From positions 8,494,001-8,558,000 of the forward strand of contig NW_026262637.1 of assembly GCF_021869535.1 (NCBI RefSeq): 64,000 nt of DNA, read 5' to 3'. Origin of the DNA: Mytilus californianus (lineage: Eukaryota). A program made the translations under genes and the position numbers. This document shows positions 901-55,957 of this stretch, piece by piece (position 1 is the stretch's first letter; every line of letters starts with the position of its first letter). Below the pieces are notes generated by a model, which saw nothing but the letters and a program-made list of their open reading frames with translations, was not told the origin of the DNA and did not search any database.

Positions 901-1348
901 TGATGCACCTGATTCAAAACATTAACATTTGTGCACCTCATGCTTTTCATGTACAAAGATTACTGTTCACTATAATAAAAGGGTTGACCAAATAAATGCT
1001 TTGTTTCACATGAAATGTATCGAACGGGCACAAAATACAATTTAAATGTTTCCAAGCATATCAAAAAGTTTAACCGATTCAATACCAGTTACTTAATTCA
1101 CAGAATATAAAACCCTTCCGTCATTTCCGCCATTACAAAAACAAACAAATAAACTGGTTTAAACCATATGCATACCCATATGACAGTCTTCATTTTTATT
1201 CTGTTACGCAGTTCCTCAATTTATATAGTTTGTTTGATTATATTCTTTATCTGTTTATGTGTTCCAGTCTAGGAGGATTATTCACCTTTAACCTTATAAG
1301 AACTTGTAAGAATTTTATAACATCGTATCATCGTTACCTTTTCCCTTT

Positions 1349-1351
<3 letters not shown>

Positions 1352-1381
<30 letters not shown>

Positions 1382-2230
1382 GTAATTTGTGGGTGGGGCT
1401 TATCTCGCCCTTTATTTTATAACACCAAGTTGTATTTCTGGCATAGTTCTTGCATGTCATCTATTCTACTTTCGCTAAAGAGAAAGTTCTTTTTGTCTCT
1501 AATGTCTGGCCAGGTATTGAAGTTTTTACTGATTTCGGCGTAAAATTCAGGATTTTTTTTCTTTTTGACGTCTTTGTATGCCTGTAATGTGTCTGAAAAC
1601 ACCAGGACATACATGTCTTTTCTCTTCAACTTCAGTATGTAAGTTCTCTGTGGATGGTCGAAAACTATCTTTTCTACCTCATGGCTTTCTTGCTGTACCC
1701 TTTCCTTTCCTGTCGTGCTGGGTGGTGGTCGACCCTCGGCACCTTTAGTGCAGGCGGGATCTTCTTGTAAATCTTGTACAGCTTCAACTGATGGAGGTAG
1801 ATCTCTGCATTCGGTTGATGTGGTTTCCGGTAATTCCTGTACTTCCACGTCTCCCATGTCGGTTGGAGCGGGTGTGCCTATCTCCTCTGGGTTTGATGAA
1901 GTTTCATCCGCATCGGACTTCTTCTTCTGGATAAAAGCTTTGAGGCGGCGAGTATTTCTCTCTGTCCGTGCTTTCGATGATTTCTTTTTCTTTGTCGTCT
2001 CTCTTTGAGTGGTAACCTTTCCTAATGGCGGCCATCTAACTGTTAGAGTGTACTGTCCATTCCTTCTGGTTAAAGTCCAGTCGGCGGTTGTACTTCCCAC
2101 CACAGCTAGTACCGATGTAACATCATCGGGTAGAGGTAGAGTATGTTCTTGGCATGATTCACGTGAAGTCATTTCACCATATTACAAGACATCATAAACA
2201 CGTCCGTCCAGGTGAAAATCTACTCACTTG
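1352..2230 (-). mobile_element. Retroposed, polyadenylated, protein-coding insert (retrocopy or non-autonomous non-LTR element)
   Basis: Perfect 17-bp TSD TACCTTTTCCCTTTCTT at 1335-1351 and 2231-2247. Pure poly(T) to 1377, i.e. a poly(A) tail on the minus strand. AATAAA on minus at 1411-1416. The empty site is visible in the LTR copy at 20941-20960. Confidence 0.9.
1417..2172 (-). CDS. Intronless 251-aa orphan protein: basic N-terminal helix, acidic/Pro-rich linker, predicted globular C-terminal ~85 aa
   Basis: Uninterrupted ORF filling most of the insert, with its stop codon directly followed by AATAAA. Visibly more GC-rich than the flanks. No family recognised. Confidence 0.8.
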   Translation of the reverse strand: MTSRESCQEHTLPLPDDVTSVLAVVGSTTADWTLTRRNGQYTLTVRWPPLGKVTTQRETTKKKKSSKARTERNTRRLKAFIQKKKSDADETSSNPEEIGTPAPTDMGDVEVQELPETTSTECRDLPPSVEAVQDLQEDPACTKGAEGRPPPSTTGKERVQQESHEVEKIVFDHPQRTYILKLKRKDMYVLVFSDTLQAYKDVKKKKNPEFYAEISKNFNTWPDIRDKKNFLFSESRIDDMQELCQKYNLVL

Positions 2231-3155
2231 TACCTTTTCCCTTTCTTACACGTTCTCGAACTGAATTGGAAGGTCATCCCAGTACTGGAGAACATTTACG
2301 GATACGCGGGTATGTTAAGGCAATTTTTTCAGGGGCAAATAACTCTTGTGATGCTCATGAATATTAATGATCAACGTTGCGTCTCCATAGTGACGACACT
2401 GTCCGCTTCATATCTCTGGTCATCAATCGCTCTCGTATTTTGTTCTTTTTATTGATAAACTATGCAGAATTAGATAAATAATGATAATTTGTTGTAATTA
2501 AAAACCATATATCACATTATTTTACAAGCCATAACTTGTATTGTATGAAAATTTTCTTGTCGATCTCGCAACGGAGGCGTGGCTTATTTTCCTTATTTGG
2601 AAAACCGATTCAACAGGAAGCTTGAAATCCACATGTTTTGAACGGACGGATTGTTTTTGTTGCATGAGGCGAAGAATGGCTCATGTACCCAAGGATTTCA
2701 GCATACAAGCAGAATCGTACGACATAACTTGACTATGAGTAAGTATTCGGTCGTCTTTTTGCTGTTTTCTGTAGCCGACTATCTTCATTTTGACAAAAAT
2801 CTACCCTTGAAGTTGCATCTTCTCCCCCTTTTTTCCATCTGTTCAGTAGAATTTAGAAATTATCCCTGAACCAAGGATTTGTATAGTATACTATGCCTGA
2901 ACTATCTTAAATGCAAGTCCATTGATGGTCCACAGTGTTTATGTGCAATTTAGATGAAGTTTTAGAATACCCATGAGTTGTCCTGGAAATTTGTTATGCT
3001 ATAGTTACACTTTTTGATATAAAAACAAATTAATGTGCTCTAGCCTATTCCATGGTTGGCCAGTTGACATTCAATCTGTTTGAATTCATGAATCATGGAT
3101 ATTATTTCTTTTGAGAGCGAGTTATATCAGAACATGAGATTGGCAACTCTGATAA

Positions 3156-4436
3156 GGGGACGACCATTTGATATTCTGGGGGGGGCCAGGAGGATTTTGA
3201 AAATAAATAACTCAGCCTTGATAATCACAAAAATAAATGGTTTGTTCTGTGGTAGTTTGAAAATAAATTACTTGATTTGCAATGTATTGAAAATAAATAA
3301 CTCAGCAGGTCTAATCGAAAGTATGAGATGGCACCAGATTCTTCATAAATTCATCTTTTTTCCAAAAAAAAAATCGGGAAACACTTCCCATATCTTTTAA
3401 TAATAAAAGTATAAATATTATTTAAATATACTTGAAATGTCAGAAAATTGGTTTCATATAACTTGAGGTTAATTGTCTCAGGAACACTTACCTCACTTTT
3501 ATTAAATCAGGGCCGTAACTACATTGAGACAAATGCCTCATGTAGGAAATTTCAAAACCAAACGCTCGTCTCCATATCAAATTGTGTTCACCGTGAGTGC
3601 CTTGCAAGAAGCAAGTTCTGTTCTCCCTCAGACGTAGCCCCTGATTTTTTTTATTTGTCTTTTGTTCATTGATTGCCCTTCTGTATTCTGTTAGTGTTGC
3701 ATTCATTTTGTAATTTAGTAATTTTATTATTAACTTGATCATGAGTTTAAAAAAAACACAGCAGCCACAGACTTAACTATGTGAATTACATTTTTGCTTT
3801 ATCATGCATATTTGTCTTTTGATGTTGTCCCTAGAAACTTAAGTCTTACACTGAATCTATAACGTGATTTTGCTTTGAGACTAAAATATTGTCAAAAAAT
3901 TATTAAAACAGAACTTGCATTTTCAGTTTAAGAAAGGGTCTGGGGAACACCCAGAAAGCATGATTTTGCATCATTTGTTCTATAGCTTCTTGGGCCTTCA
4001 GCGGTTCAAAAACCCTTCAAAAAAAATTTTGCCTCGCTCTGCTCGGCAAAACATGTTTGCCAATATTTTGTTAAAAGAGCCTTAGTTACAACCAAACTTT
4101 AATACTGTGTATGTATGCAATACATGTACATGCATTGGGGAATATAGAAGATTCATTTCTGCAGAGGATAATAATTAATTCTGATTAAATGGTACATAAT
4201 GACTTGACTATACATGTATTATTTATAATAAACAAATAATTTAAAAATTGTATGTTTTTGAATATTATAAATATAGTTGTGAAAATAAATAATCAGTCCC
4301 TTGCTTTAATGAAAATGAAAAATCTTGCTTCAATAGTGCAGAAAATAGATAATCTGTCCTCTTAGTTTACAAAAATAAATAACCGATCCAAAACAAATCC
4401 TCCTGGCCCCCCCCAGAATATCAAATGGTCGTCCCC
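3156..4436. mobile_element. Non-autonomous DNA transposon (MITE) with a 3-bp TAA TSD (PIF/Harbinger- or Zator-type)
   Basis: 42-bp perfect TIR GGGGACGACCATTTGATATTCTGGGGGGGGCCAGGAGGATTT. TAA at 3153-3155 and 4437-4439. Subterminal AAAATAAAT repeats at both ends. Confidence 0.85.
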
Positions 4437-5680
4437 TAACAAGTTGACTGGTCTAAAATGAATCTGAAGGCAACTGTAGAAGAAGAACACACTAGACTGA
4501 ATTTTCTACATAGACCCTACCTCAATATTATCAATATAAACTCTATTGAGCACCTTTATTATCACAGAGTTTATAACTTCGCAGACAGTGTGTAGGCAAG
4601 ACACTGCCAGATGTTTTGAAGTTATCTATGTACATGTTCAAACCACACTTTCCCTCAATTTCAAAGCTGCATCATGCAAGGTCAGTTTTTAGACATGCCA
4701 AAACAACAAAAATTCTAGATTTTTATTCACTTAAAGACTTGAAAGACTTAAAATTAAGTGTAACTGTATGCTGATTGATTTTTTATTCTTTGGCTACCGC
4801 AGGCCAGATTCTTATTTTCTAAAGAAAATTCTGCATAGTACGTATACCTATTCGTCTGTCGTGTACAAAAAAAATGTAGTACTTACTAAATAGAAATTCT
4901 GAGAGACCTAAAAGAAGTTTTTTAAAAACCTGGGCTGTTGGTCCTGTGCCCAAATGTAAATCTTATATATACAAATGTATATACCCTTATTTTATTCTGT
5001 ATGCTACTTTGTACATCTGTACATGTTGTAGTTCTTTAATATGTATATGAATAAAAGGAGATGTAGGGTAGGGTGTACATTGTTCATTGTTTGTGTACAT
5101 AATCATACATCATGAGACAGCTACTGAAGTTCTTTCTGTTCGACATGTTGTACTACCAGAATAAAGTTCATTTTTGTTTCATTCTGTTTAATTATATAAC
5201 AGTCTGTATGAAATATGTTACATGTATCAAAAGGGAAAATAAATATTATAATTATTCAGCCTAAGGCTAAATTGATGTCATGTATGTCACATGGAGGTGT
5301 CTTCGAAAAATATTGAAAAACAAATGTCACCCACGGAATCAGACAAGTATCAAATAAAAAAGATTTACATTTGTATCTAGCTTTCCTCTCTTACATAATA
5401 ATATAGAATAAGTAATATCAAAACTGGAAAACATATTATGATTGCCAACAATTCACAGCATGAACAGATCCAAATGAAGTAGAAGTTAACATCTATAGGT
5501 CACAGTGTTCTCCCCAGACACTTTATTTAGCATCTTGGTAAACTGGGAAATTAGAAATATCATCTTGTTAAGGTTTTTGTTTTATGTCACTTATATATAT
5601 GACAATATAGAATTATTATTATAAAAATTATAGCATCACATTGATATTAAACATTATCTATACAAAAACTAATTCAGATA

Positions 5681-14739: not shown

Positions 14740-16090
14740 TTCAGTCCAGAAACTGGAGAAGGATTTTGGAATATGGATGATAAGCCAATGCCAGTAGTTA
14801 AAACAGCAACACACATTGGAATACATAAATCAGAAAAAAAACTCAGTCCAGTTAACAGTTGAAGAAAACATCAAAAAAGCAAGACGCACTTTATATAGTT
14901 TAATGGGATCAGGTCTACATGGAACCAACGGTTTGGACCCAGAAACAATTATCTCACTAGTTAAAACTTTTGTACTACCTATTCTTACTTATGGACTAGA
15001 AATTTTGATCCCAAAGGAAAATCTCTAACAACTCTTAATCTTTACCACAAGAAATTATTAAAACAGCTACTATCATTATCTACAAATACAGCAGACCCAG
15101 CCATTTATATACTCTCTGGCATGATACCTATTGAAGCTGAGTTACATATCAAAATTTTGACATTATTTGGGACCATCACGAGATCAGAAAAAACTTCAAA
15201 TGTGTGGAGAATAGCGGAAAGGCAGCTTAAATTAAAATCTTTCAATAGTAACAGTTGGTTCATTGATATTAAAAAACTCTGTTTGTTATATAATATAGAA
15301 AATATAGAAAACTTTCTGGACAATCCACTAACAAAAACAAAATGGAAATCCTTTATAAACAATAAAGTGCAAAGCTACTGGACCAATAAAATTATTGATG
15401 ACTCAAAGTTGTACTCAACTCTTCGGTATATAAATTGTCAATATTCTATTGGGAAAATACACCCATTGATCACTACAAAAACAGCCAACAATAGAGACAT
15501 TGTAAGGATTCCTACAAGAACCAAAATTGCTACAGGAACATATATATTTCAATCGAATCGAGCATCATTCAATAAAAACAAAGTCAGTCCAACATGTAAA
15601 CTTTGTAATAAGAGTCCTGAAATCTTGTCACATTTTTTACTAACATGTGAGTCACTTGAAACCGACAGGAAAAGACTGATGGAGATAATAATTGATATGG
15701 GAAGTGAACTTTTAGCAAAATCTTGCTTTGTAGTGGAAGTAGACTTAGTTCAGCTAATAGTTAATCCCTTCTACTATACTGTGGATAAATGTAACAATGA
15801 AATTGTTCTAAATATTACTGGACAACTAGAGAGTGTGTGTAGACAGCTTATTAACAATCTGCATATGAAGCGGTATGAACTGCTAACCAAACAACAAAAA
15901 TGTGAAAAGAAAAACAATCTTTCATGAGGAGTAAATATAAAGTAAACTATATATGACATTAAGCTGATGATCAGGGTGGGAATCTCCACAGGTATCATCA
16001 GTTGTAATCGAATAAAATAGACGGTTATCAACCAATAATACATTTGGTTATTATATGGGTGCATACAGATTAAAATTAAAGATAAAATTT
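14740..16090 (+). mobile_element. 5'-truncated non-LTR retrotransposon (LINE; RTE-X/CR1/L2-like ORF2 C-terminus plus 3' UTR)
   Basis: RT C-terminal motifs (THIGI...KARRTLYSLMGSGLHGTNGLDP...LPILTYGLE), a frameshift near 15025, then ORF 15121-15927 with zinc-finger-like CKLCNKSPEILSHFLLTC. Simple GATTAAAATTAAAGATAAAA tail. The 5' boundary is approximate. Confidence 0.85.
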
Positions 16091-16869
16091 ATCTTTTTTA
16101 TTGTCAAATCATATATTAATTGTACATAACGGTGGCGGTACAGAAGTCATTTTTATTGATATATTACTAAGTATTCATAATTGGATTAGACATTCATTGC
16201 GTATTATTATATTGTGTGGTGAAGGATATATATATTCAACTCCATTTGAGGTGTGCCTACATTGGCAGAATTTATCTCGATACAGATACAGATACAGTGC
16301 GCTTGAATAACATAGACAATTTATCGAAACCATAGTTACCAATTCTAAATTCACAAAAAGCGGGTTACCAGAGACGATATTTCTCAAAAAAATAAACTGA
16401 AATAGAAAGCTATAGATAAAACCTAACAGAAAAGTATGAAACTGTAATCAAAATAGGAACGAAACTATGTACAAATGTAACGTTATATGCTGCCGGGTAA
16501 ACTAAAAATATTATTTTTATTTAATATGTTCACTTCTGGAAAATCGCGCAGCACTTTTAATTAACGGGAAAGCACAAGGATTCGTTTAAAAAAAAGTTTG
16601 TTGATTTTTATTCAGTGTAGTAACACGTTTTTTGCCAATTTGGTTAAGGCATTTTACCCCTGTAGAAGTCACGTGACCTAGGCGATCATGACCAAAATTT
16701 CGGTTTACTGAATCCTTACTACACGAATATATAAATTCAACAACTTAGATTCCTGAATTTTGGTTTAAACAATTTTATTCTTGAATTATCATAATTTTGC
16801 CACTATTTACGTTTCAAAGTTCCTTAACCTACCTGCGTAAACGTCATTTCGGACACAATTCGTGGCTAA

Positions 16870-19830: not shown

Positions 19831-20810
19831 TGTTCCGCTTGAAGTCAACACGAAGATAACTAACATTTCAATCACGGAACCAGAACAACGTCTTGCCTCA
19901 AGACCGGAAATAGCCTTCAAGGACGAAAATCAAATTGTTGTTCAGGATAACGACCAACACTTTAATTCAAAGCCAAGGTTGCAAAATCGCATTCCATACA
20001 ATTCCTTGAGTGTACTGGACCTAGTACCAAATCTGGTAAACTCACGAATTTCTCTAGAGAGACAGCACTCGTGTCACTAAAAGCAAAATCTGTGACTTCT
20101 ATTGAAGACCTGAAGTTCATGGAGAGGAAATCAGTCGCATTCACAAACCTATTTAGAAAGAAGGACCGATTGCCAATCTCAAGGTGCCTTTTAACAATCA
20201 ACGTCTACTCCGAATAGGAAGCAGTATCGCCACGTCCGACTTGAATATTAGTGAAAAGGAACCGGTGGTCTTTTCTTGACATCATCACAAAGTTACACCC
20301 TTTGTTCGACATTACTACGACAAAATCAAACATCGAGGTCGCCACTTCACAGATAAAGCGACTAGATCAGCAGGATGGAACGTTAGGACGAAACGCTTAA
20401 TTTCGTCTGATACTCACAAAGAAGCGACATTTCGCCAAATCGGACGAGGACCAAGTACTTACTCTCATCATACTTACCGGAGGACCATCTTCGACCGTCA
20501 TCGCCGTCTAACAACGTTGGAGGAATTAAAGTTCCTATTATCAATGGAACATTCTACAGAACACAACAATCTCATCCGATACATCCTTCTTCTAAAGAAC
20601 AAGAAACTGTGCCAAACCCAGTTTCCCGTGGAATTAATTTATTCATGAAACTTTATAGTGAAAAGTCGTAAGTTGAGACCTGATATTTTTCACACGACCA
20701 ATAGTGAACATTTCACCTGTACATATTCAATGTATGTTGGGATTTAGTTTTTTTTCTTATATTCATATGCGATTAATTTATGGAATAGTGATATCAGAAA
20801 GACATCAGTT

Positions 20811-21009
20811 TACGCAGTTCCTCAATTTATATAGTTTGTTTAATTATATTCTTAATCTGTTTATGTGTTCCAGTCTAGGAGGATTATTCATCTTTAACCC
20901 GATAAGAACTTGTAAGAACTTTAAAACATCGTATCATCGTTACCTTTTCCCTTTCTTACACGTATCTCGAACTGAATTGCAAGGTCATCCCAGTATTGGA
21001 GAACATTTA
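20811..21009 (+). repeat. BEL/Pao 3' LTR (portion alignable to 1205-2300)
   Basis: Uninterrupted homolog of the LTR at 1205-2300, ending GGAGAACA(TTTA). The true 5' start is unresolved because the PPT region appears deleted. Confidence 0.75.
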
Positions 21010-23976
21010 AGGACAAACATCATTTCGGACACAATTCGTGGCTATTAAACCACAGAGTGGGTTAATTTTATAACATTGTATCTAAAGCCTTCAAATTGCT
21101 TTTCACATATTTGGACCTTTTCTCCGTGAAATACTGGAAATTTAACTGTTCTTGAAAGTACAATATTTTCTCGCATTCAATGGACTGTGCTATCAATCAT
21201 ATATGACATTTCGTTATCATAACATTAATTTAACACATTGTAAAATTGTATTTTATTTGTATTTCAGCTTTTTACCATTTGTTAGATTGATTCATAATTA
21301 AAGTATCAGCACCAGATAGTCTTTTCTGCTTGAGCCCAATCGTCGGTTATACCTAATGGTCAGGTCATAACAATTTTTCGTTTTTTGAGGCATATTTCTA
21401 CTAAGATAAAATTTACATATTCGCAATTTTATTTTTGATTGAAAACAAATGCTTAATATATTTTAAGTATGTTATTTGTTCTTTAACTGTAACAATAGTT
21501 GAATCTGAATAGTTGAAACAAATATTACAGAATTTAGGGGTAACAAAAATTGAATTAAACCAGATATAAACTTATGTGTCATCTGTGAAAGTGCAACTTG
21601 GCTTCTCATATGCTCAATATGAATAAAATTAGTGTCATAACTATACATCTACAACTTTAAAAACCAAATGATTGCAAGTTCCTATTTAAAACATTCAAAG
21701 AAGTTTACAATATAACATTATTTTTTTTCTATTTTCAGGAATAAAAACGGTAAGGATATTCGTACATATAAACAAAAATACTGTCCAGGTTTTTCAACTA
21801 CAATATTTTTTTACACAGATTTCTATATGTAGAAATATAGCTTTCGTTAGTCGATCTCTTTTTTCCTATTCTACTTTTGAATTAAAAAAAAACATCCTTC
21901 AATTCGATTTTCGCAAAGCCGCATTTTGAACGTCCAAATTTTAAAACTGTTCGATTTTCTTGTTTGACTGGTAGTGTAGCATTTATTAGTTAGTTCTTTC
22001 ATATTTTAGGCTGTCTTTGGCATTAGTTATTTAGTATGTTACTTGTTCACTTTTCAATTTTGTTTCCTTCATTAAAGTTGGTAATCATTGATATATGATA
22101 TAATAAGCTTCTGTGTTTCTAGATTTATGTATACTTATTATTTGTTATGTTCGTTGTCATATTTCCTTGATATCAAAAGCTTCACAGGTTGAATTCCGTT
22201 GTCAATTAATCTGTATTTTTCAGACGTCAATATATGTAATAAGTATTGTTTCGAGTCATATAGTTTGCATAACAATGAGAAGATGTGATATAATTGCAGA
22301 TGATACAACTCTCCACCAAAGACCAAATGACATCAACGATAAAAAAAAATACAGATAACCTACGGCCTTTCAAATTAAGCAAGACCCATACAAAAAGAAT
22401 ATTTCTAACATCAAATTTGAGTTCAGTTATTTCACATTTAGTCGGCAAATGGAGATTGCCAATATTTCGTTTTCATTTTTGACATATGCACTGTTGTTTT
22501 AGATCCGTGGCATTGGTTCCTCCATGCAAAACGGTAAAAGAAATGTTTTTGATAAATATTAGAATTCATGTAATAAAAGTCGTACAATATTTCGTGTTAA
22601 AAGTCGTACAATATTTCGTAAACGATTTTATTCTTTGCAAATTGGTATAACTGTAATTGTACTGCATCTTATTCAAATTTTGCTCCAAATGTATCACTCT
22701 AAATGCTAAAAAAACACAGAGACTTTTTAATATATTTTTTTTTTCAATTAAGCAAGTTCAGCATCATTGATAAACGAGGCACTATTATACTAATTCGTAT
22801 TAATTATTTATGACACGATTGGAAGAATATGTCAACAAATTTCATCATCTTAACCTATGCACAAAAAAATCAATACAAACAAATGAACGTAACAAGAAAA
22901 AGCAACAAACACTAATCGCTGCATATTCAAAAGCTAAGAGTGTATAATTACTTAAAACAGATAACAATAGGTGCAAATGTCAGCAACAAAGACTGACAAA
23001 TAGCTAAATGCATCTTATTTCAACTTTGTTAGAGAGAGAGAATTGGATCCATAACTGCTCAACAAATTTATATACGAATAATTTAGGATATGTAGGTTAT
23101 AACTCATGTTTAAACCAAGTCTGGAAATTTGTTAATTGACTGATTGTGTTTTATTCCCTTTCTAGAAATATTGAATGTGGTTTGATTAGTTTCTCTGGTA
23201 AAAATTTCATAGCAGTAGACTAAATTATTGTTCGTGCGATGTTCTCACTTTTATATATTTCATAATAGAAAAAGAGCATATAGTTTATTCTAAACAAGAG
23301 TAAATTACTGTCGTGTAGCATCGCATATGGTACATGCATATTGCCCTGAGGAATAACGTGTATTACGTGTACACAAACTTCTCTGTTGCCTATTTAGATC
23401 ATGTCTCGTCACAATAAAACACACAATAAATATCTTTATCCTAAAGTTACAATAACAGAATGACCACTAATTCGCAATGAAATTTGGAAGCATGATATCA
23501 ATATACTTTTCCTTGTTTTTTATGTATTAAAGACTTTTTTTAGGTATTTGTAAAACGTTTAACGTTACGGGTCTTCTGATCTTTGAGTCACAAAGCAAAC
23601 CGATGCTTGTTGACTTTCAGTTAATGAACAGTACTATTCATATCCGACAAGGAAGCTCTTCCTCTGATGTAAGATTATCTTAATGATATATTTGATTTGT
23701 GAATTCCTACCTGTCAAATAATGCAAGTATACTAATATCAAGGTTGCATTATCTTAGGCAAAGAAACAAAGCAATAACTTTGTTTTTTGCATACATTAAG
23801 ATTGTTTCTGGATTTTTTTATTATTATTATTTGTTTATTTATTTATTTACACAAAATATCAATTAGTTAGACACAGGCTACCATTTCATTTCTTGTTTTT
23901 AAAACTTATGTCAGATTTACTGTTTAGGGAATAATATTGAATTTCTTGTTATCAAAAACTGCATATTTAATTCCAG

Positions 23977-28250: not shown

Positions 28251-28550
28251 CGCCGCTTTTAAATTTGAACTTGTCCGCACCCGTTCTCCAAAACCGCTTG
28301 TCAGATTAACTTAGGGTTTCACAATATGTTAGACTAACATGTCTAGTGGTGCAATCAGGGTTTTGTTTGTGCAATGGGGTTTATAAAGGGGTACTTTGAG
28401 GGGCAAAAAGAAAAGAGGGTTTTACTATAGAACCCTATGGGATTTTATTTTTTGAAATTTTCAAATGATTATAAATTGAAAACCGTTTGTGATAGACACA
28501 ATCTTTTTAATTGAAAATGTTCTAAATGATAAAGCCCATTTAATGAAATA

Positions 28551-31112
28551 CAGGGTTAGTCCCCAGGGGCCACCCCCACCCCCTGCCATTTAAGAACGTT
28601 CTAATACCTTGTAAGTGGTCAAGATCCCCACCCCTAAACCATATATATTTTGGTTTGTTATGCTAAGATGGTTTGAATGATATACAGGGTTAGTCCCCAG
28701 GGGTCATCCCCACCCCCTGCCATTTGAGAAAGTTCTAATATCTTGTAAATGGTCGAGATCCCCACCCCTAAACCATATATATTCTGGTTTGTCATGATAA
28801 AGCACATCAAATGTAATACAGGGTTAGTCCCCAGGGGTCACCCCCACCCCCTGCCATTTAAGAAAGTTCTAATATCTTCTAAGTGGTCAAGATCCCCACC
28901 CCTAAACCATATATATTCTGGTTTGTCATGCTAAGATGGTTTGAATGATATACAGGGTTAGTCCCCAGGGGTCATCCCGACCCCCTGCCATTTGAGAAAG
29001 TTCTAATATCTTGTAAATGGTCGAGATCCCCACCCCTAAACCATATATATTCTGGTTTGTCATGATAAAGCACATCAAATGAAATACAGGGTTAGTCCCC
29101 AGGGGTCACCCCCACCCCCTGCCATTTAAGAAAGTTCTAATATCTTCTAAGTGGTCAAGATCCCCACCCCTAAACCATATATATTCTGGTTTGTCATGCT
29201 AAGATGGTTTGAATGATATACAGGGTTAGTCCCCAGGGGTCATCCCGACCCCCTGCCATTTGAGAAAGTTCTAATATCTTGTAAATGGTCGAGATCCCCA
29301 CCCCTAAACCATATATATTCTGGTTTGTCATGATAAAGCACATCAAATGAAATACAGGGTTAGTCCCCAGGGGCCACCCCCACCCCCTGCCATTTGAGAA
29401 CGTTCTAATACCTTGTAAGTGGTCAAGATCCCCACCCCTAAACCATATATATTTTGGTTTGTTATGCTAAGATGGTTTGAATGATATACAGGGTTAGTCC
29501 CCAGGGGTCATCCCCACCCCCTGCCATTTGAGAAAGTTCTAATATCTTGTAAATGGTCGAGATCCCCACCCCTAAACCATATATATTCTGGTTTGTCATG
29601 ATAAAGCACATCAAATGTAATACAGGGTTAGTCCCCAGGGGTCACCCCCACCCCCTGCCATTTAAGAAAGTTCTAATATCTTCTAAGTGGTCAAGATCCC
29701 CACCCCTAAACCATATATATTCTGGTTTGTCATGCTAAGATGGTTTGAATGATATACAGGGTTAGTCCCCAGGGGTCATCCCGACCCCCTGCCATTTGAG
29801 AAAGTTCTAATATCTTGTAAATGGTCGAGATCCCAACCCCTAAACCATATATATTCTGGTTTGTCATGATAAAGCACATCAAATGAAATACAGGGTTAGT
29901 TCCCAGGAGTCACCCCCACCCCCTGCCATTTAAGAAAGTTCTAATATCTTCTAAGTGGTCAAGATCCCCACCCCTAAACCATATATATTCTGGTTTGTCA
30001 TGCTAAGATGGTTTGAATGATATACAGGGTTAGTCCCCAGGGGTCATCCCGACCCCCTGCCATTTGAGAAAGTTCTAATATCTTGTAAATGGTCGAGATC
30101 CCCACCCCTAAACCATATATATTCTGGTTTGTCATGCGAAGATGGTTTGAATGATAAACAGGGTTAGTCCCCAGGGGTCATCCCGACCCCCTGCCATTTA
30201 AGAAAGTTCTAATATCTTCTAAGTGGTCAAGATCCCCACGCCTAAACCATATATATTCTGGTTTGTCATGCTAAGATGGTTTGAATGATATACAGGGTTA
30301 GTCCCCAGGGTCATCCGGACCCCCTGCCATTTGAGAAAGTTCTAATATCTTGTAAATGGTCGAGATCCCCACCCCTAAACCATATATATTCTGGTTTGTC
30401 ATGATAAAGCACATCAAATGTAATACAGGGTTAGTCCCCAGGGGTCACCCCCACCCCCTGCCATTTAAGAAAGTTCTAATATCTTCTAAGTGGTCAAGAT
30501 CCCCACGCCTAAACCATATATATTCTGGTTTGTCATGCTAAGATGGTTTGAATGATATACAGGGTTAGTCCCCAGGGGTCATCCCGACCCCCTGCCATTT
30601 GAGAAAGTTCTAATATCTTGTAAATGGTCGAGATCCCCACCCCTAAACCATATATATTCTGGTTTGTCATGATAAAGCACATCAAATGAAATACAGGGTT
30701 AGTTCCCAGGGGTCACCCCCACCCCCTGCCATTTAAGAAAGTTCTAATATCTTCTAAGTGGTCAAGATCCCCACCCCTAAACCATATATATTCTGGTTTG
30801 TCATGCTAAGATGGTTTGAATGATATACAGGGTTAGTCCCCAGGGGTCATCCCGACCCCCTGCCATTTGAGAAAGTTCTAATATCTTGTAAATGGTCGAG
30901 ATCCCCACCCCTAAACCATATATATTCTGGTTTGTCATGCGAAGATGGTTTGAATGATAAACAGGGTTAGTCCCCAGGGGTCATCCCGACCCCCTGCCAT
31001 TTGAGAAAGTTCTAGTATTTTGTAAATGGTCGAGATCCCCACCCCTAAACCATATATATTCTGGTTTGTCATGCCAAGATGATTTGAATGATATACAAGG
31101 TTAGTCCCCAGG
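28551..31112. repeat. Tandem array of 19 full 134-bp units plus a partial unit, with dimeric and hexameric higher-order structure
   Basis: CAGGGTTAGT starts at 28551, 28685, 28819 ... 30962 and 31096; spacing is 134 bp (once 133). Confidence 0.97.
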
Positions 31113-32877
31113 CATCACTAATGCATATAACTTTACTGGATTAAACTAATTTTCACTGGACGTTGCCCAATGTCAGGCGACCCTGGGAATTACGAATTAT
31201 GGGAGCTTCGTTTGGGAGACTTCGTAACAGCATCCTGTTACAATCATTTCTTGTTTAAGTAAATAATGACATCAAAAGCACTTATTCGTGTCAGAGTAGG
31301 GCTACTTTTAAATACAGTCTAAATTATAGGGAGTGAATTGGTGGTCTGACACCTAAACGTCCCTGTAAAAAAACTGTTATCTTACAATGAATATAATTGT
31401 AATAAGTTTTACACGCATTTTAGGATGGGTGCTCATAATAAAAAATACAAATTTTGGTGAGAGATCTTTGCCATCTGGAAGTGAAGTTGGTATGTACACA
31501 TATATTTTCTATCATTGTATGACGCTATAAAATAAATATAGCATATTCTATGCTTAAAATATAACACCAAAATGAAGTTCAAGGAATTGGTACATCCGGA
31601 TGCGACACCAGTATTCTGACAATAACTTCATGCTTTACGTTTAAAGAAGTTGCAGACCTAAAAAGTAAGAATCAGATTTCGATCGTGTATTTTTTTTTGT
31701 TTAATCCGTTATATACTGTTGAATTTAATATGCTTGGTTTCGATCCGTTATATCGAAAAGTAACTTAAAATCGGGCATCTGGTAGATCAAATTAATGCTC
31801 ACAAGCCTTGCGTTGTTAAAATTATCACTGGATAAAAATTATTACCTATGTGTCTGCCTTTGCTCCTACATATTCCTACATATTCAAATATAAATGATAC
31901 ATTTCCAAAATTCAACATTCATACTAAACCTACGATAATAAAATAAGAATGCATGTTTTAGTTGTAATATATATGTTGTTTAACTGATACCACAAGGTAC
32001 CAATATTTGAGAGTGGGATGTATAAAAACATTACATCGACTGAAAACAACTGAATATGGAACAATCTGTTCGAAATTCTTAAGCCAATTTCATATGTAGA
32101 AGTTTTGTTGTTTTACTTATTTTAATAATTGTATTGGTGAATAACATGAATAACTGTACATATTTTGCTTTCATCCGATCATTAATTGATAATGAGCAAT
32201 TGTTTTCCATCGAAGCATTGAACACCAGCGTCTATTTCTTCCTTCCTTTTCTGATTTCAAATCCGGGGTATAGTTCAAAGCACAGCAGACGGTGCAATTT
32301 CAGTAGTGACGTCAATTACCTGCAGCCCATGTTTTGTTGGAACTAGAACATGGCAATGTTTCCAAAGCAAAAGAAGAATGTCATAATAGAATATAGTTCT
32401 TTTTTTTTTTGGTCTGTTGTATTGCTTGTTTAGTTTGTTTTTTAATCGCAACATTATAACAACCCTCAAAGTACCCCAACTCAGAGTAAAAATATTTAAG
32501 GGTCCTTTATCTAATTTTTGCAGCTATACCCTTTGAATGCAAACATAATTCTACTCCAAAATGATGTACCTGACAGTTTAATTTTTATTAAATTACGTCC
32601 CTGGAGATTCGTAAAATTCGTACTCTTTCTCGTCATTTCCCCGTTGACTCAATTGTAAACCTAGTAACCAAGATATATCTAGCAAAACAGGCTACTTTTA
32701 ACAGTTTAAATTGAGGGGAAATGACGTCTCGCATCGATTCGAAAAAGTGAATTGTTCGGGATTGTTTAAAATGCGGATAAGTTTGGATATGTTTAGATGT
32801 GTTGCATGAATTTTCCGACATGAGCAGAACATCATAGCTGTTGACGTATTTTAAAAGTAGCTATAAAAGAGGGGCGA

Positions 32878-49212: not shown

Positions 49213-51189
49213 CGCTCATATCTTAGAAGATGGAGAATGTATAACACTGAGGTAGAAAACTTGGCTTGCCTAAGTGATGATGAGGAAAGTGTGTCGAGCC
49301 ATGTATCAGCTGTACAAGAAGGTTCAGAAAGAATGCATGAATTGTCTGAAAGTCAGAGCAGTAACATTAATATTAATCATGAATATGGCAACAATGAAAA
49401 TGAAGCGAGTAGTGATAATGTCGAAAGCAGTAATGATGAAGAAATAAGTAGTGAAGAAGAACAGAGTAGTGAAAATGATAGTTCTGGAAGTAGCCGAGTA
49501 TCAAGTGAAGATGAACAATCTGATTCTGATAATAATGATCTTTGTAAAGATTTAGCTGAATGGGCCACTGAGAACAAAACATCAAGAGATGGCTTAAATT
49601 CTTTGTTATTTATCTTTAGAAAATATGGACACCGCGTTCCAAAGGATTCTAGAACACTGTTAAAAACTCCTCGACATATCGATATAAATAAAAAATGTGG
49701 AGGTGACTATATATATTTAGGAATTGAAAGTGGTATTTTAAAAATTTTGACTCAAAACGCAAGACATTTTACAAGAAATAATGAGCTGTTGTTAGATTTT
49801 AACATTGATGGTGTCCCACTTTTTAAATCATCAAACACACAGTTTTGGCCTATATTATGCAGTTTGTCAAAATATGAACCTTTTATAGTGGCTTTATACT
49901 GTGGAAATTCCAAGCCAAATTCTGTGCAGGCTTATTTGTCAGATTTTTTAGGAGAGTTGGAAAATTTAAAAACGCATGGAATAACTTTTAATGAAATTTT
50001 ATACACCGTCAAATTAAATGCTTTTATATGTGATGCTCCAGCCAGGTCCTTCATAAAATGTACTGTAGGTCACAATGGTTACTACAGCTGTGAAAGATGT
50101 ACCATTAGGGGTGAGTGGAATGGCCGTGTTGTTTTTAATTCATCTGATAACAGTCCTCCATTGCGAACTGAGGAGGAATTTAGAGCATGCCTATACAGCA
50201 ACCATCAAACATCACGCTCACCATTAATAGATGCAGGACTGTTTTGCATAAATACCTTCCCACTTGACTACATGCATTTAGTTTGTCTAGGTGTAGTGAA
50301 GAGGATTCTTATGTTCCTGAAGCAAGGTCCAAGGGAGTGCAAGTTGTCACAACAACAACTTAAATTGATATCAGACAAACTAAAAAACCTCCGTGGGAAA
50401 ATGCCAAGGGAGTTTGCTAGACAGCCACGTTCTCTTGAATTGGACAAATGGAAAGCAACAGAATTCAGACAGTTTGTCTTGTACAGTGGGCCCTTAGTGC
50501 TGAAGTCTGTTCTTTCTAGGGCTATGTACAACCATTTTTTAACATTGACCGTGGCCTTAAGCATTCTTTTAGACTCAATTAAAGAAACCAGAAATGCCTA
50601 CTTGGATTATGCCCAAGAACTTATGACATATTTTGTGAAGAATGCCACAACTCTATATGGAAATACATTTGTTTCCTATAATGTTCATGCATTGGTCCAT
50701 GTTACTGATGATGTAAAAAACTATGATACATCACTCAACGATTTGAGTGCATTTCAGTTTGAAAATTATTTACACCAGATTAAAAAGAAGGTTAAAAATG
50801 GACAAAACCCTATTGTGCAAGTAGTCAAGCGATTGACAGAGGCAGAAAAGTCTAATATTCGTCGTATTCATAGTAAGACCTTTATGTATGTATCCATGAA
50901 AAAAAAGGATGGTTGTTTTCTTCTCTGGAATCAGAATTTCGCCTTTGTCAGAGAACGACGCCCAGGAAAAAAATATGTTTGTGATATATTAAAGCCACAA
51001 TATACTGAACAATTTTTCAAGGAGCCATGTGATTCCAAATTGATTAACATTGCTGTTGCTAAAAACATAGAAAGATATGCTTCAAGGCAAATGGTGGAAG
51101 AAGCTGACATTGAAAGAAAAGTTGTTTGCTTGCCATATGAAGGAGGGTACCTGTTGATGCCTATGTTGCATGGTATTGAGAGACATTAG
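49213..51189 (+). CDS. CACTA/EnSpm-type DDE transposase exon (658 codons; 668 aa with the 10-aa leader exon)
   Basis: Open 650-aa ORF extended to the TTTTACAG acceptor (RSYLRRWR...). Motifs NIDGVPLFKSS.QFWPIL, CDAPARSFIK..GHNGYYSCERC, LDYMHLVCLGV, WKATEFRQF, NVHALVH and FQFENYL. Confidence 0.95.
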   Translation, partial: RSYLRRWRMYNTEVENLACLSDDEESVSSHVSAVQEGSERMHELSESQSSNININHEYGNNENEASSDNVESSNDEEISSEEEQSSENDSSGSSRVSSEDEQSDSDNNDLCKDLAEWATENKTSRDGLNSLLFIFRKYGHRVPKDSRTLLKTPRHIDINKKCGGDYIYLGIESGILKILTQNARHFTRNNELLLDFNIDGVPLFKSSNTQFWPILCSLSKYEPFIVALYCGNSKPNSVQAYLSDFLGELENLKTHGITFNEILYTVKLNAFICDAPARSFIKCTVGHNGYYSCERCTIRGEWNGRVVFNSSDNSPPLRTEEEFRACLYSNHQTSRSPLIDAGLFCINTFPLDYMHLVCLGVVKRILMFLKQGPRECKLSQQQLKLISDKLKNLRGKMPREFARQPRSLELDKWKATEFRQFVLYSGPLVLKSVLSRAMYNHFLTLTVALSILLDSIKETRNAYLDYAQELMTYFVKNATTLYGNTFVSYNVHALVHVTDDVKNYDTSLNDLSAFQFENYLHQIKKKVKNGQNPIVQVVKRLTEAEKSNIRRIHSKTFMYVSMKKKDGCFLLWNQNFAFVRERRPGKKYVCDILKPQYTEQFFKEPCDSKLINIAVAKNIERYASRQMVEEADIERKVVCLPYEGGYLLMPMLHGIERH

Positions 51190-54508: not shown

Positions 54509-54913
54509 TACATGTTTGTATCCATACGGGGCCACCTTTAAAAAACTACTGTTTGGTGTTGCCTTATATTATCACAGTCTGTGCCAAAAACTTTTTCATC
54601 TACTTGTACGAAATCTAAATATCAAAATTTGTCCCTATATGCCTATATTAAATTTTTGAAATTGGTACTAGTCCAAATCAATATTTACTAGTATGGTTCA
54701 TAGGACTAGTGGCAACCTCGGAGCAGGAAATAATCTGAAAATGTTTTTTGTGAAGGCTGCTTTTTAGGAGAAAAAGGCATGTTTCGATGAATTGTAATAG
54801 AAAATGTTATTTATGACGTAAACTGTTCCTGTTGTCTTTTTTATGTGCTTTTGTTATATGATTGCTTTAAATGGAAAAAGAAATAATTGTTTGCCTTCTT
54901 TTTAACTCCATAG

Positions 54914-55726
54914 TTACAGAGAAGAAGAGTTCCAGTCAGACTTCTAACCACAGAGATTCTAGATCGCCATCACAAAAATTGAGTTCCAGTCAGACTTCTA
55001 ACCACAGAGAGTCTAGATCGCCATCAAAAAAATTGAAGTCTACAAATACATTGAAGTCCACAACAAGACCATCTACCAGGCAAGAATCACCACCATTTCG
55101 TCAGAAGTCAAGATCTCGATCACCACTTATCACACAGAGGTCCAGATCAAGATCAAGATCCCCACCATTATCTCAGAGGTCAAGATCTAGATCTCCACCA
55201 AACAATCAGACATGGAGATCTAGATCAAGAAGCTATTCACCGCCGACAGATATTTTTTCAAAACTAAAATCTATTTATTCCTATTCGTCCAAGTCCACAA
55301 CAAGATCACCAACAACACAGAATCCATCACAAAGAAAACCGTCAAACACAACTCAAAAATCCACAAGACCTTCAATAGAGGAGATATTACAAGAATTGAA
55401 AAAAAGATCCTCACATAGTCTCCATACTCAGAAATCAAAATCTAGTGAAGATAGGTCACATTCAACAGGGAACAGTCAAGGGTCTAGATCTTCCTCACCT
55501 CTTGAGGATTATCTACTGCCAAGCTCACAATCTCAACCACAGAGAGTTTCTACCAACAACAACAGAGCAAGGTCTAGATCACCACTAGAGGATTGGCAGT
55601 CATTCAGCAGCAACATAAGCTCAAGGTCTCATGTCAGGGAAAATACTTCAACACCAGCTGCAAAAAATATACCATCTGGCAGAAAGACGAGTAACAATTC
55701 AGAGACATTTCCAATGTCTGATGAAC
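54914..55726 (+). CDS. Large Ser/Arg-rich low-complexity exon of the accessory gene
   Basis: 813 nt, phase 1-1; RSRSRSP runs; a 54-bp tandem duplication at 54928 and 54982. Confidence 0.85.
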
Positions 55727-55957
55727 GTAAGTGTAAATTTACATCTGCATTTCAAAATGATATCACACAAAATTTTGAATCAAACACTAGGAAATACCTT
55801 CAACATGCCTTACTATTTTGATATTTACCTGCACCACACAACTACTACTTCAATTGTTGGTTAACCCTAGATGTTTCAGTTTTATTTTGATATTTATTAA
55901 GGAAAGGTTTTGAAAATACTAATTTTTTTCTTATGAGAGCTTTCTGCATAGAAATTG

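Follow-up and report, generated by a model that had tools for sequence, protein, structure and literature searches.

A 64,000-nt stretch of the genome of the mussel Mytilus californianus (NCBI RefSeq assembly GCF_021869535.1, contig NW_026262637.1, positions 8,494,001 to 8,558,000; the whole stretch is called the window below) contains an insert on its minus strand, at positions 1352-2230, which proved to be genuine and to have been retroposed very recently. With a probability of roughly 60%, we consider this insert to be young and to belong to a family of protein-coding, non-autonomous retroposons without long terminal repeats (non-LTR retroposons) in mussels, a family that works in the manner of HAL1 and HeT-A. 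A preliminary description of this DNA had offered a multicopy family of non-autonomous, protein-coding retroelements, HAL1-like in behavior, as one of its readings, and the diverged copies that we found in three Mytilus species speak for it.

The insert is intronless, 879 bp long and bracketed by a perfect duplication of its target site (Table 1). The duplicated 17-mer occurs three times in the 64-kb window; its third occurrence, at 20941-20957, is an uninterrupted site within another copy of the repeat that surrounds the insert. This empty site is paralogous, neither allelic nor orthologous. A filled site, a paralogous empty site and a duplication that lies exactly at the junctions together rule out chance. 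On the plus strand, the tail is part of a run of T from 1350 to 1377, of which two nucleotides are ambiguous between tail and duplication; it begins 33 nt past the last base of the AATAAA polyadenylation signal. By its tail of A26-28, the duplication directly flanking it and the presence of an empty site, the insert has the hallmarks of a product of target-primed reverse transcription mediated by a long interspersed nuclear element (LINE). Its GC content of 43.5% exceeds the 33% found in the flanks and in the window as a whole. The 17-bp duplication, the pure poly(A) tail, the AATAAA at the stop codon, the 58-nt leader, the lack of introns, the intact open reading frame (ORF) of 251 amino acids (aa), the elevated GC content and the empty site in the second repeat copy had all been reported from the letters before, and all of them are indeed there, the ORF running uninterrupted from 2172 to 1417. 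No second copy of the element was found in the window, so that the window alone shows a single copy.

Table 1. Features of the retroposed element, its host repeat and its encoded protein, and family copies with clean duplications at other loci (pLDDT, predicted local distance difference test score; pI, isoelectric point; UTR, untranslated region)
Feature	Position in window	Strand	Remarks
Host repeat, left piece	1204-1334		95% identity with 20810-20940
Target-site duplication, element's 3' side	1335-1351		17-mer repeated exactly at 2231-2247
Retroposed element, 879 bp	1352-2230	-	leader, ORF, short 3' UTR and A tail; bracketed by the duplication and missing from the paralogous repeat copy
Poly(A) tail, pure, 26 nt	1352-1377	-	28 nt with the two T of the duplication
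Conserved 3' UTR motif	1396-1410	-	from family comparison; possible hairpin (4 bp, 7-nt loop)
AATAAA polyadenylation signal	1411-1416	-	directly adjoins the stop codon
Intact ORF, 251 aa plus stop	1417-2172	-	single uninterrupted ATG-to-TAA frame
C-terminal domain, aa 160-251	1420-1695	-	predicted four beta strands, then two helices; pLDDT 89-96
Acidic low-confidence linker, aa 90-157	1702-1905	-	pLDDT <50; pI 4.1
Basic helix, aa 61-89	1906-1992	-	AlphaFold2 prediction; conserved block in alignments
N-terminal small helix plus beta-hairpin domain, aa 11-50	2023-2142	-	AlphaFold2 prediction, pLDDT 75-86
5' leader, 58 nt	2173-2230	-	contains module A at 2195-2228
Target-site duplication, element's 5' side	2231-2247		17 bp, perfect match to 1335-1351
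Host repeat, right piece	2248-2302		~95% identity with 20958-21013
Host repeat, second, uninterrupted copy	20810-21013		empty site at 20941-20957
Family copy L003, M. galloprovincialis			duplication 17 bp; tail ~30 nt, A-rich; unit 1061 bp
Family copy L008, M. galloprovincialis			duplication 18 bp; tail A50; unit 1050 bp
Family copy L009, M. coruscus			duplication 12 bp; tail ~A25; unit 990 bp
Family copy L012, M. coruscus			duplication 16 bp; tail ~A19; unit 946 bp
Family copy L001, M. coruscus			duplication 13 bp; short A-rich tail; unit 847 bp

The ORF had been called an orphan, and this did not hold. A word-based protein search with the window ORF returned one relative only; an exhaustive HMMER scan of 1.84 billion representatives gave 29 related clusters at E <= 1e-3 (22 at E <= 1e-10), and these relatives included a dozen full-length proteins of 250-293 aa with 30-44% identity. 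A profile word search gave 21 proteins, and each named one was from Mytilus. The named relatives were exclusively "hypothetical" or "unnamed" proteins of Mytilus coruscus, M. galloprovincialis and M. edulis; the remaining ones were encoded on ~1-kb contigs from Tara metagenomes, Logan assemblies and one NCBI assembly. None was longer than 293 aa, one fused gene model apart. This model (P0031 of M. edulis, 1270 aa, named DDX23) joins the family ORF to a neighboring host gene and is an annotation artifact.

The DNA around eleven relatives, chosen through their predicted proteins, was then read. At every locus, the ORF lay in a like unit and was followed by a 3' UTR and a tail straight after the stop codon, and in no copy read did a second ORF for a reverse transcriptase (RT) or an endonuclease follow the family ORF. 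A family unit has ~0.9 to 1.1 kb and consists of a leader of one or two modules, an ORF of 250-290 aa, an AATAAA at the stop codon and a poly(A) tail. The ten genomic copies read, that of the window included, are all intronless poly(A) units. In addition to the window copy (17 bp), five of them (L001, L003, L008, L009 and L012) have clean, perfect duplications of their own, with a length of 12-18 bp. The tails of L002 and L005 are rich in A, and the duplications around these two copies are not as clean. On the Tara contigs L004, L013 and L014, a long A tail either forms the end of the contig or is read through; L007 shows only a short A run behind its 3' motif, and in L006 the contig end cuts the 3' UTR. 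(The start of the L006 contig, from GCA_029782575.1, is apparent sequencing-adapter sequence at L006:1-18, and the quality of this contig is low.) L013 and L014 encode an identical protein and are joined to different DNA beyond the tail; they thus represent two insertions. The flanks of different family copies do not match each other.

The closest relative of the window element is L001, a degraded M. coruscus copy at another locus, with 92.5% identity in the aligned blocks. L001 is interrupted by four frame-shifting indels and, in the reference frame, by two stops, and the start of its ORF is lost; in L005, also degraded, there are two stops and fourteen indels, nine of which shift the frame. 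Gene models with several exons (P0001 and P0021) have been predicted across these degraded copies, L001 and L005, respectively, and the model over L005 continues into a neighboring LINE RT fragment. An intron-containing parent was found neither among the relatives from two protein searches nor among the nine further genomic copies read.

The nick site in the window, TTTCTT|AC, had been taken to resemble an L1-type endonuclease target. The window site is indeed T-rich, but in this it is the exception, since the six clean target sites have no common nick motif. An L1-type target preference was therefore rejected as a trait of the family, there being no motif common to the other five insertions.

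The structure of the encoded protein was predicted with AlphaFold2 from an alignment of 18 family members; a model from the single sequence had a pLDDT of 46.7 and was discarded. In the family-based model, a small N-terminal domain and a basic helix are separated from a C-terminal domain by an acidic linker (Table 1). The segment from aa 53 to 88 has a pI of 11.5, with 14 Lys plus Arg in 36 residues. The linker is predicted to be disordered, and it varies in length and sequence across the family. Two columns are invariant among the 18 members (D223 and R225 in window numbering) and five are nearly invariant (M1, K168, Y211, W221 and R236). Both invariant and four of the five nearly invariant columns are in the C-terminal domain. 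In all, the window protein contains four Cys and three His residues.

The ratio of nonsynonymous to synonymous substitution rates (dN/dS) was determined for L008 and L012, which are intact copies at different loci in two species. Its overall value was 0.29; the N- and C-terminal parts had 0.19 and 0.16, respectively, and the linker had 0.75. The map of dN/dS thus follows the predicted domain map, with low values in the folded domains and a high value in the linker. Judged by this substitution pattern, the two folded domains are under purifying selection. The values for L008 and L012 differ from those of neutral decay after insertion, yet L001 and L005 are degraded.

The leaders of the family are assembled from two modules. 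Module A of the window copy, whose pattern occurs nowhere else in the window, recurs with hardly any change in L001, L003 and L008; module B was found in L002, L005, L008 and L012. The leader of L008 has B and then A, and L012 of the same sub-lineage is without A. In a direct comparison of L008:3620-3736 with L012:3957-4000, the whole leader module A (~58 nt) was present in the former and absent from the latter; the boundaries are not GT-AG, and the leader is thus either modular or recombining. In its position, part of module A is reminiscent of the downstream promoter elements of insect LINE promoters.

The 3' UTR motif is GC-rich and lies directly after AATAAA; longer copies hold a second copy of it ~60 nt further on, before the tail. 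All copies read have the motif once or twice, the window copy once. It was unique in the window and did not occur in 100 shuffles, and among the loci read, leader and 3' motifs were confined to family copies. The window copy ends between the proximal and the distal positions of the motif. It was thus inserted from a transcript polyadenylated at the proximal signal, from which it follows that the distal motif is dispensable for insertion. A hairpin of 4 bp was predicted for the motif by RNAalifold, with a compensatory change in 2 of the 4 pairs. A shuffle control gave no significance, and the z-score of the single-sequence fold was an unremarkable -1.55. As a prediction from aligned sequences, the hairpin is plausible.

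The ends are more alike than the coding DNA. The window copy and L003 have 37% identical proteins and 51% identical codon-aligned DNA, while their leaders, in the best local match, agree in 43 of 46 positions and their 3' ends in 22 of 23. Leader and 3' modules are 90-93% identical in copies with 51% identity in the coding DNA. Likewise, the 3' UTRs of L008 and L012 are 94% identical, compared to a synonymous divergence (dS) of 0.24 in the ORF. Ends that are more alike than coding DNA or synonymous sites are either constrained or exchanged between lineages, or both.

We then asked whether the protein belongs to any known class. That the insert encodes no RT and no ORF1-type domain had been proposed before and was borne out, since Pfam gave no family for the window protein at E <= 10; for the 18 members, only scattered chance-level matches were seen at E <= 1. 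Profile and fold comparisons, of the kind to which the preliminary description had looked, returned no match: there was none in PDB, either by sequence or by profile, and nothing in PDB or BFVD with Foldseek at E <= 0.001, the top matches being WD40 blades and other trivial beta-meanders. PHROGs gave a chance-level match only. No viral protein was among the sequence relatives, all named ones being mussel genome proteins. The domains of LINE ORF1 types I to IV (RRM, CCHC, coiled coil/Transposase_22, PHD and esterase) were not detected by Pfam, and the predicted order in the C-terminal domain, four strands and then two helices, differs from that of an RRM. No homology to the ORF1 of an autonomous LINE emerged, there being no Pfam, PDB or fold match and no long relative in the 1.84 billion representatives. 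Rfam returned nothing for the element and seven loci, and ARAGORN found no tRNA. A short interspersed nuclear element was ruled out, because there is neither a tRNA nor an Rfam family and the unit of 879 bp has a conserved ORF of 251 aa. Such elements are non-coding, have a head that derives from a small RNA with a Pol III promoter and are mostly shorter than 600 bp. A metagenome scan with the 3' motif gave two GC-rich bacterial contigs without the family ORF, which we judged to be chance. Literature searches by topic and by motif strings retrieved no description of this mussel retroposon family. As a separate observation, the window contains a plus-strand ORF of 268 aa at 15121-15927 that resembles the C-terminal end of a LINE ORF2, although its zf-RVT match is weak and below the Pfam cutoff; no poly(A) tail is evident downstream of it, and it does not carry the 3' motif of the retroposon.

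Like HAL1, the family has a single ORF without RT or endonuclease, is present in many copies and bears LINE-type insertion hallmarks. Since no RT is encoded in the family units, they must borrow the copying machinery of a LINE. We propose that a polyadenylated transcript would be copied into the genome by target-primed reverse transcription, with endonuclease and RT provided in trans by an autonomous LINE and with priming on the A tail. Priming on the A tail would fit the dispensable distal 3' motif. In the case of the window copy, the transcript was polyadenylated at the proximal signal. The conserved leader may be a promoter that travels with the element and would make new copies transcribable. 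The protein would serve the spread of the element itself; by analogy with LINE ORF1 proteins and the Gag of HeT-A, it would probably attach to the element's own mRNA with its basic helix and folded domains and draw in the LINE enzyme. The ORF itself may descend from a LINE ORF1 or from a captured host gene.

Several points weigh against a non-autonomous retroposon family. No autonomous partner LINE with a common leader, 3' motif or ORF was found in the family loci or in one metagenome scan. Since there is no match to a known domain or fold, a role of the protein in retroposition is pure inference. The loci were sampled through predicted proteins, which favors intact ORFs, and the copy number amounts to dozens of predicted proteins and is not a census. 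The hairpin in the 3' motif draws on two compensatory changes only. Finally, passive copying of the mRNAs of a host gene family would be compatible with the dN/dS values as well.

The last point leads to the best of the competing explanations, a host or long-domesticated, fast-evolving mussel gene family whose abundant germline mRNAs are passively retrocopied by LINEs and whose ORF serves the mussel. If this were the case, purifying selection on the folded domains would be explained equally well, and the lack of a partner LINE with common sequence and of any likeness of the protein to known transposon proteins would be in line with it, as would the ordinary AATAAA and the ordinary poly(A) tail used by the window copy. 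However, all ten genomic copies are intronless poly(A) units, six of them with clean duplications of their own, and the only multi-exon models overlie the degraded copies, with no spliced parent seen. Moreover, lineages that are 30-40% identical all exist as retroposed units, and retroposition has thus long been the mode of spread. The conservation of the UTR ends above synonymous sites also fits cis-acting signals that travel with the copy. A host gene family is therefore unlikely in our view.

More improbable still is a true HAL1 analogue, that is, an internally deleted derivative of a specific mussel LINE that kept its 5' UTR, ORF1 and 3' end; this would be a special case of the non-autonomous family favored here. 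The layout of leader, ORF1-sized ORF, 3' tail motif and A tail is what is expected of a deletion remnant, HAL1 arose from L1 several times (PMC5753468), and ORF1 proteins are diverse, with a recognized unclassified class (PMC4120745). But apart from the fused gene model, no relative exceeds 293 aa, no ORF2 follows any of the copies read, and the ORF has no RRM, CCHC, coiled-coil/Transposase_22, PHD or esterase signature. Many deeply diverged lineages are all without ORF2, which argues for an old and stable ORF1-only state and not for a recent deletion.

It is highly improbable that the insert is just one ordinary processed pseudogene of an intron-containing host gene or that it was copied from a viral mRNA, because the one copy in the window and hallmarks that any LINE-made retrocopy would have are set against many copies in three species with intact ORFs under selection, no parent gene seen, no viral protein among the sequence matches and no BFVD match at E <= 0.001. 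Both kinds of retrocopy had been considered in the preliminary description, and each lacks a source: a one-off copy of a cellular mRNA is unlikely because no intron-containing parent was seen, and a copy of a viral mRNA is unlikely because neither a viral protein nor a viral fold matched.

Protein-encoding non-autonomous retroposons are rare, and the textbook cases, HAL1 and HeT-A, both have a recognizable LINE Gag or ORF1. HAL1 of mammals is a non-autonomous poly(A) retroposon that encodes an ORF1-type protein only, depends on the ORF2 protein of a LINE and forms long-lived multicopy families (PMC5753468). The mussel family is likewise a multicopy poly(A) family with a single ORF and no RT. 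However, the ORF of HAL1 is recognizably that of L1 ORF1, whereas the mussel ORF matches no ORF1 domain or known family; furthermore, the mussel family is found in a bivalve, its unit has only ~1 kb, and no parent LINE is known. HeT-A of Drosophila, an abundant non-LTR element, has one Gag-like ORF and lacks an RT of its own, which must come from elsewhere (PMC2173066). One Gag- or ORF1-like gene and a borrowed RT are common to both, but HeT-A transposes only to chromosome ends, where it serves telomere maintenance, whereas the mussel copies are dispersed with ordinary target-site duplications. The Gag of HeT-A also has recognizable Gag-type motifs, and the mussel ORF has none.

A third comparison is with the EKA family (homologues of Avrk1 and Avra10) of Blumeria graminis, whose very many members are small protein-coding units derived from LINE ORF1 and spread by LINEs, with evidence for translation (PMC4641428). 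The mussel family is also one of small protein-coding units spread by LINE retrotransposition. EKA units, however, are truncated pieces of identifiable LINEs co-opted as effectors, whereas the mussel units are complete, with conserved ends of their own, and have no identifiable LINE source and no known host role. With processed retrogenes and retropseudogenes, the family has in common the lack of introns, the poly(A) tail and a target-site duplication of variable length. Such retrocopies have a spliced parent and are usually without a promoter; no parent was found for the mussel family, in whose deeply diverged lineages the leader and the 3' end are better conserved than synonymous sites.

LINE ORF1 proteins have been divided by Khazina and Weichenrieder into types with RRM plus CCHC knuckle (I), coiled coil plus RRM plus C-terminal domain (II), PHD (III) and esterase (IV), with type V unclassified (PMC4120745). 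The mussel protein is of similar size, has a basic, nucleic-acid-binding-like segment next to folded domains and is encoded by an ORF that is both the first and the only one of a poly(A) retroposon. However, none of the domains by which types I to IV are defined was detected in it, and no ORF2 follows. If derived from a LINE, the mussel ORF would be "type V, unclassified."

A bolder version of the preferred reading can be put forward only tentatively, namely, that the units are a long-lived "selfish retrogene" lineage: mobile genes of ~1 kb whose protein is unrelated to any class of LINE ORF1, with a promoter-bearing leader and a 3' signal of their own and with end modules swapped among sub-lineages, which may have persisted in mytilids purely by hijacking the RT of LINEs. 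If true, this would be a new kind of non-autonomous, protein-coding retroelement and not a deletion derivative of a LINE. In either form, the family is a compact one in bivalves, with a conserved and selected ORF that has no detectable relative outside the family and with ends far more constant than the coding part. LINE/partner relations are poorly known in molluscs. If the ORF helps to capture the LINE machinery, it would be a new solution to the function of ORF1 and a handle on trans-mobilization in these animals. There is also a practical side: in Mytilus gene sets, units of the family appear as "hypothetical proteins" and are also fused into host gene models ("DDX23"), and their recognition would clean the annotation. 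They may also account for some of the presence/absence "genes" in mussel genomes.

The repeat into which the element inserted had been described as an LTR. It is a repeat of ~204 bp in two copies 19.6 kb apart, of which 1204-1351 matches 20810-20957 with 95% and 2231-2302 matches 20941-21013 with ~95% identity. The usual LTR terminal dinucleotides were not present at the ends of either copy, and the bases outside the two copies gave no matching flanking duplication, which has 4-6 bp in LTR retrotransposons. Between the copies, ORFs of at least 95 aa were listed, and a scan of those three that reach 245 aa detected no gag or pol ORF but only the weak LINE zf-RVT match of the ORF at 15121-15927. 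For its size and for these three reasons an LTR was rejected; the host is a two-copy repeat of 204 bp without LTR hallmarks. A stretch of 30 nt adjoining the second copy (21015-21044) recurs with 97% identity at 16839-16868, ~4 kb upstream, and the host repeat thus belongs to a more complex repeated landscape.

The window has some further features. Dense direct and inverted repeats of a GC-richer unit of ~20 nt fill positions 113-348, which match themselves on both strands with 73-88% identity; a 161-aa "ORF" over this region matched no Pfam family. The longest and the third-longest ORFs of the window, both on the plus strand (49237-51189, 650 aa, and 54871-55821, 316 aa), also had no Pfam family. 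At 28428-31238 there is a tandem satellite with a unit of 134 bp in ~20 copies, in which alternate units are more alike (87-88% versus 97-100%), which suggests a higher-order repeat of 268 bp. Finally, a perfect inverted repeat of 43 bp at 3155-3197 and 4395-4437, ~1.2 kb apart, may mark the two ends of a small DNA transposon as its terminal inverted repeats.

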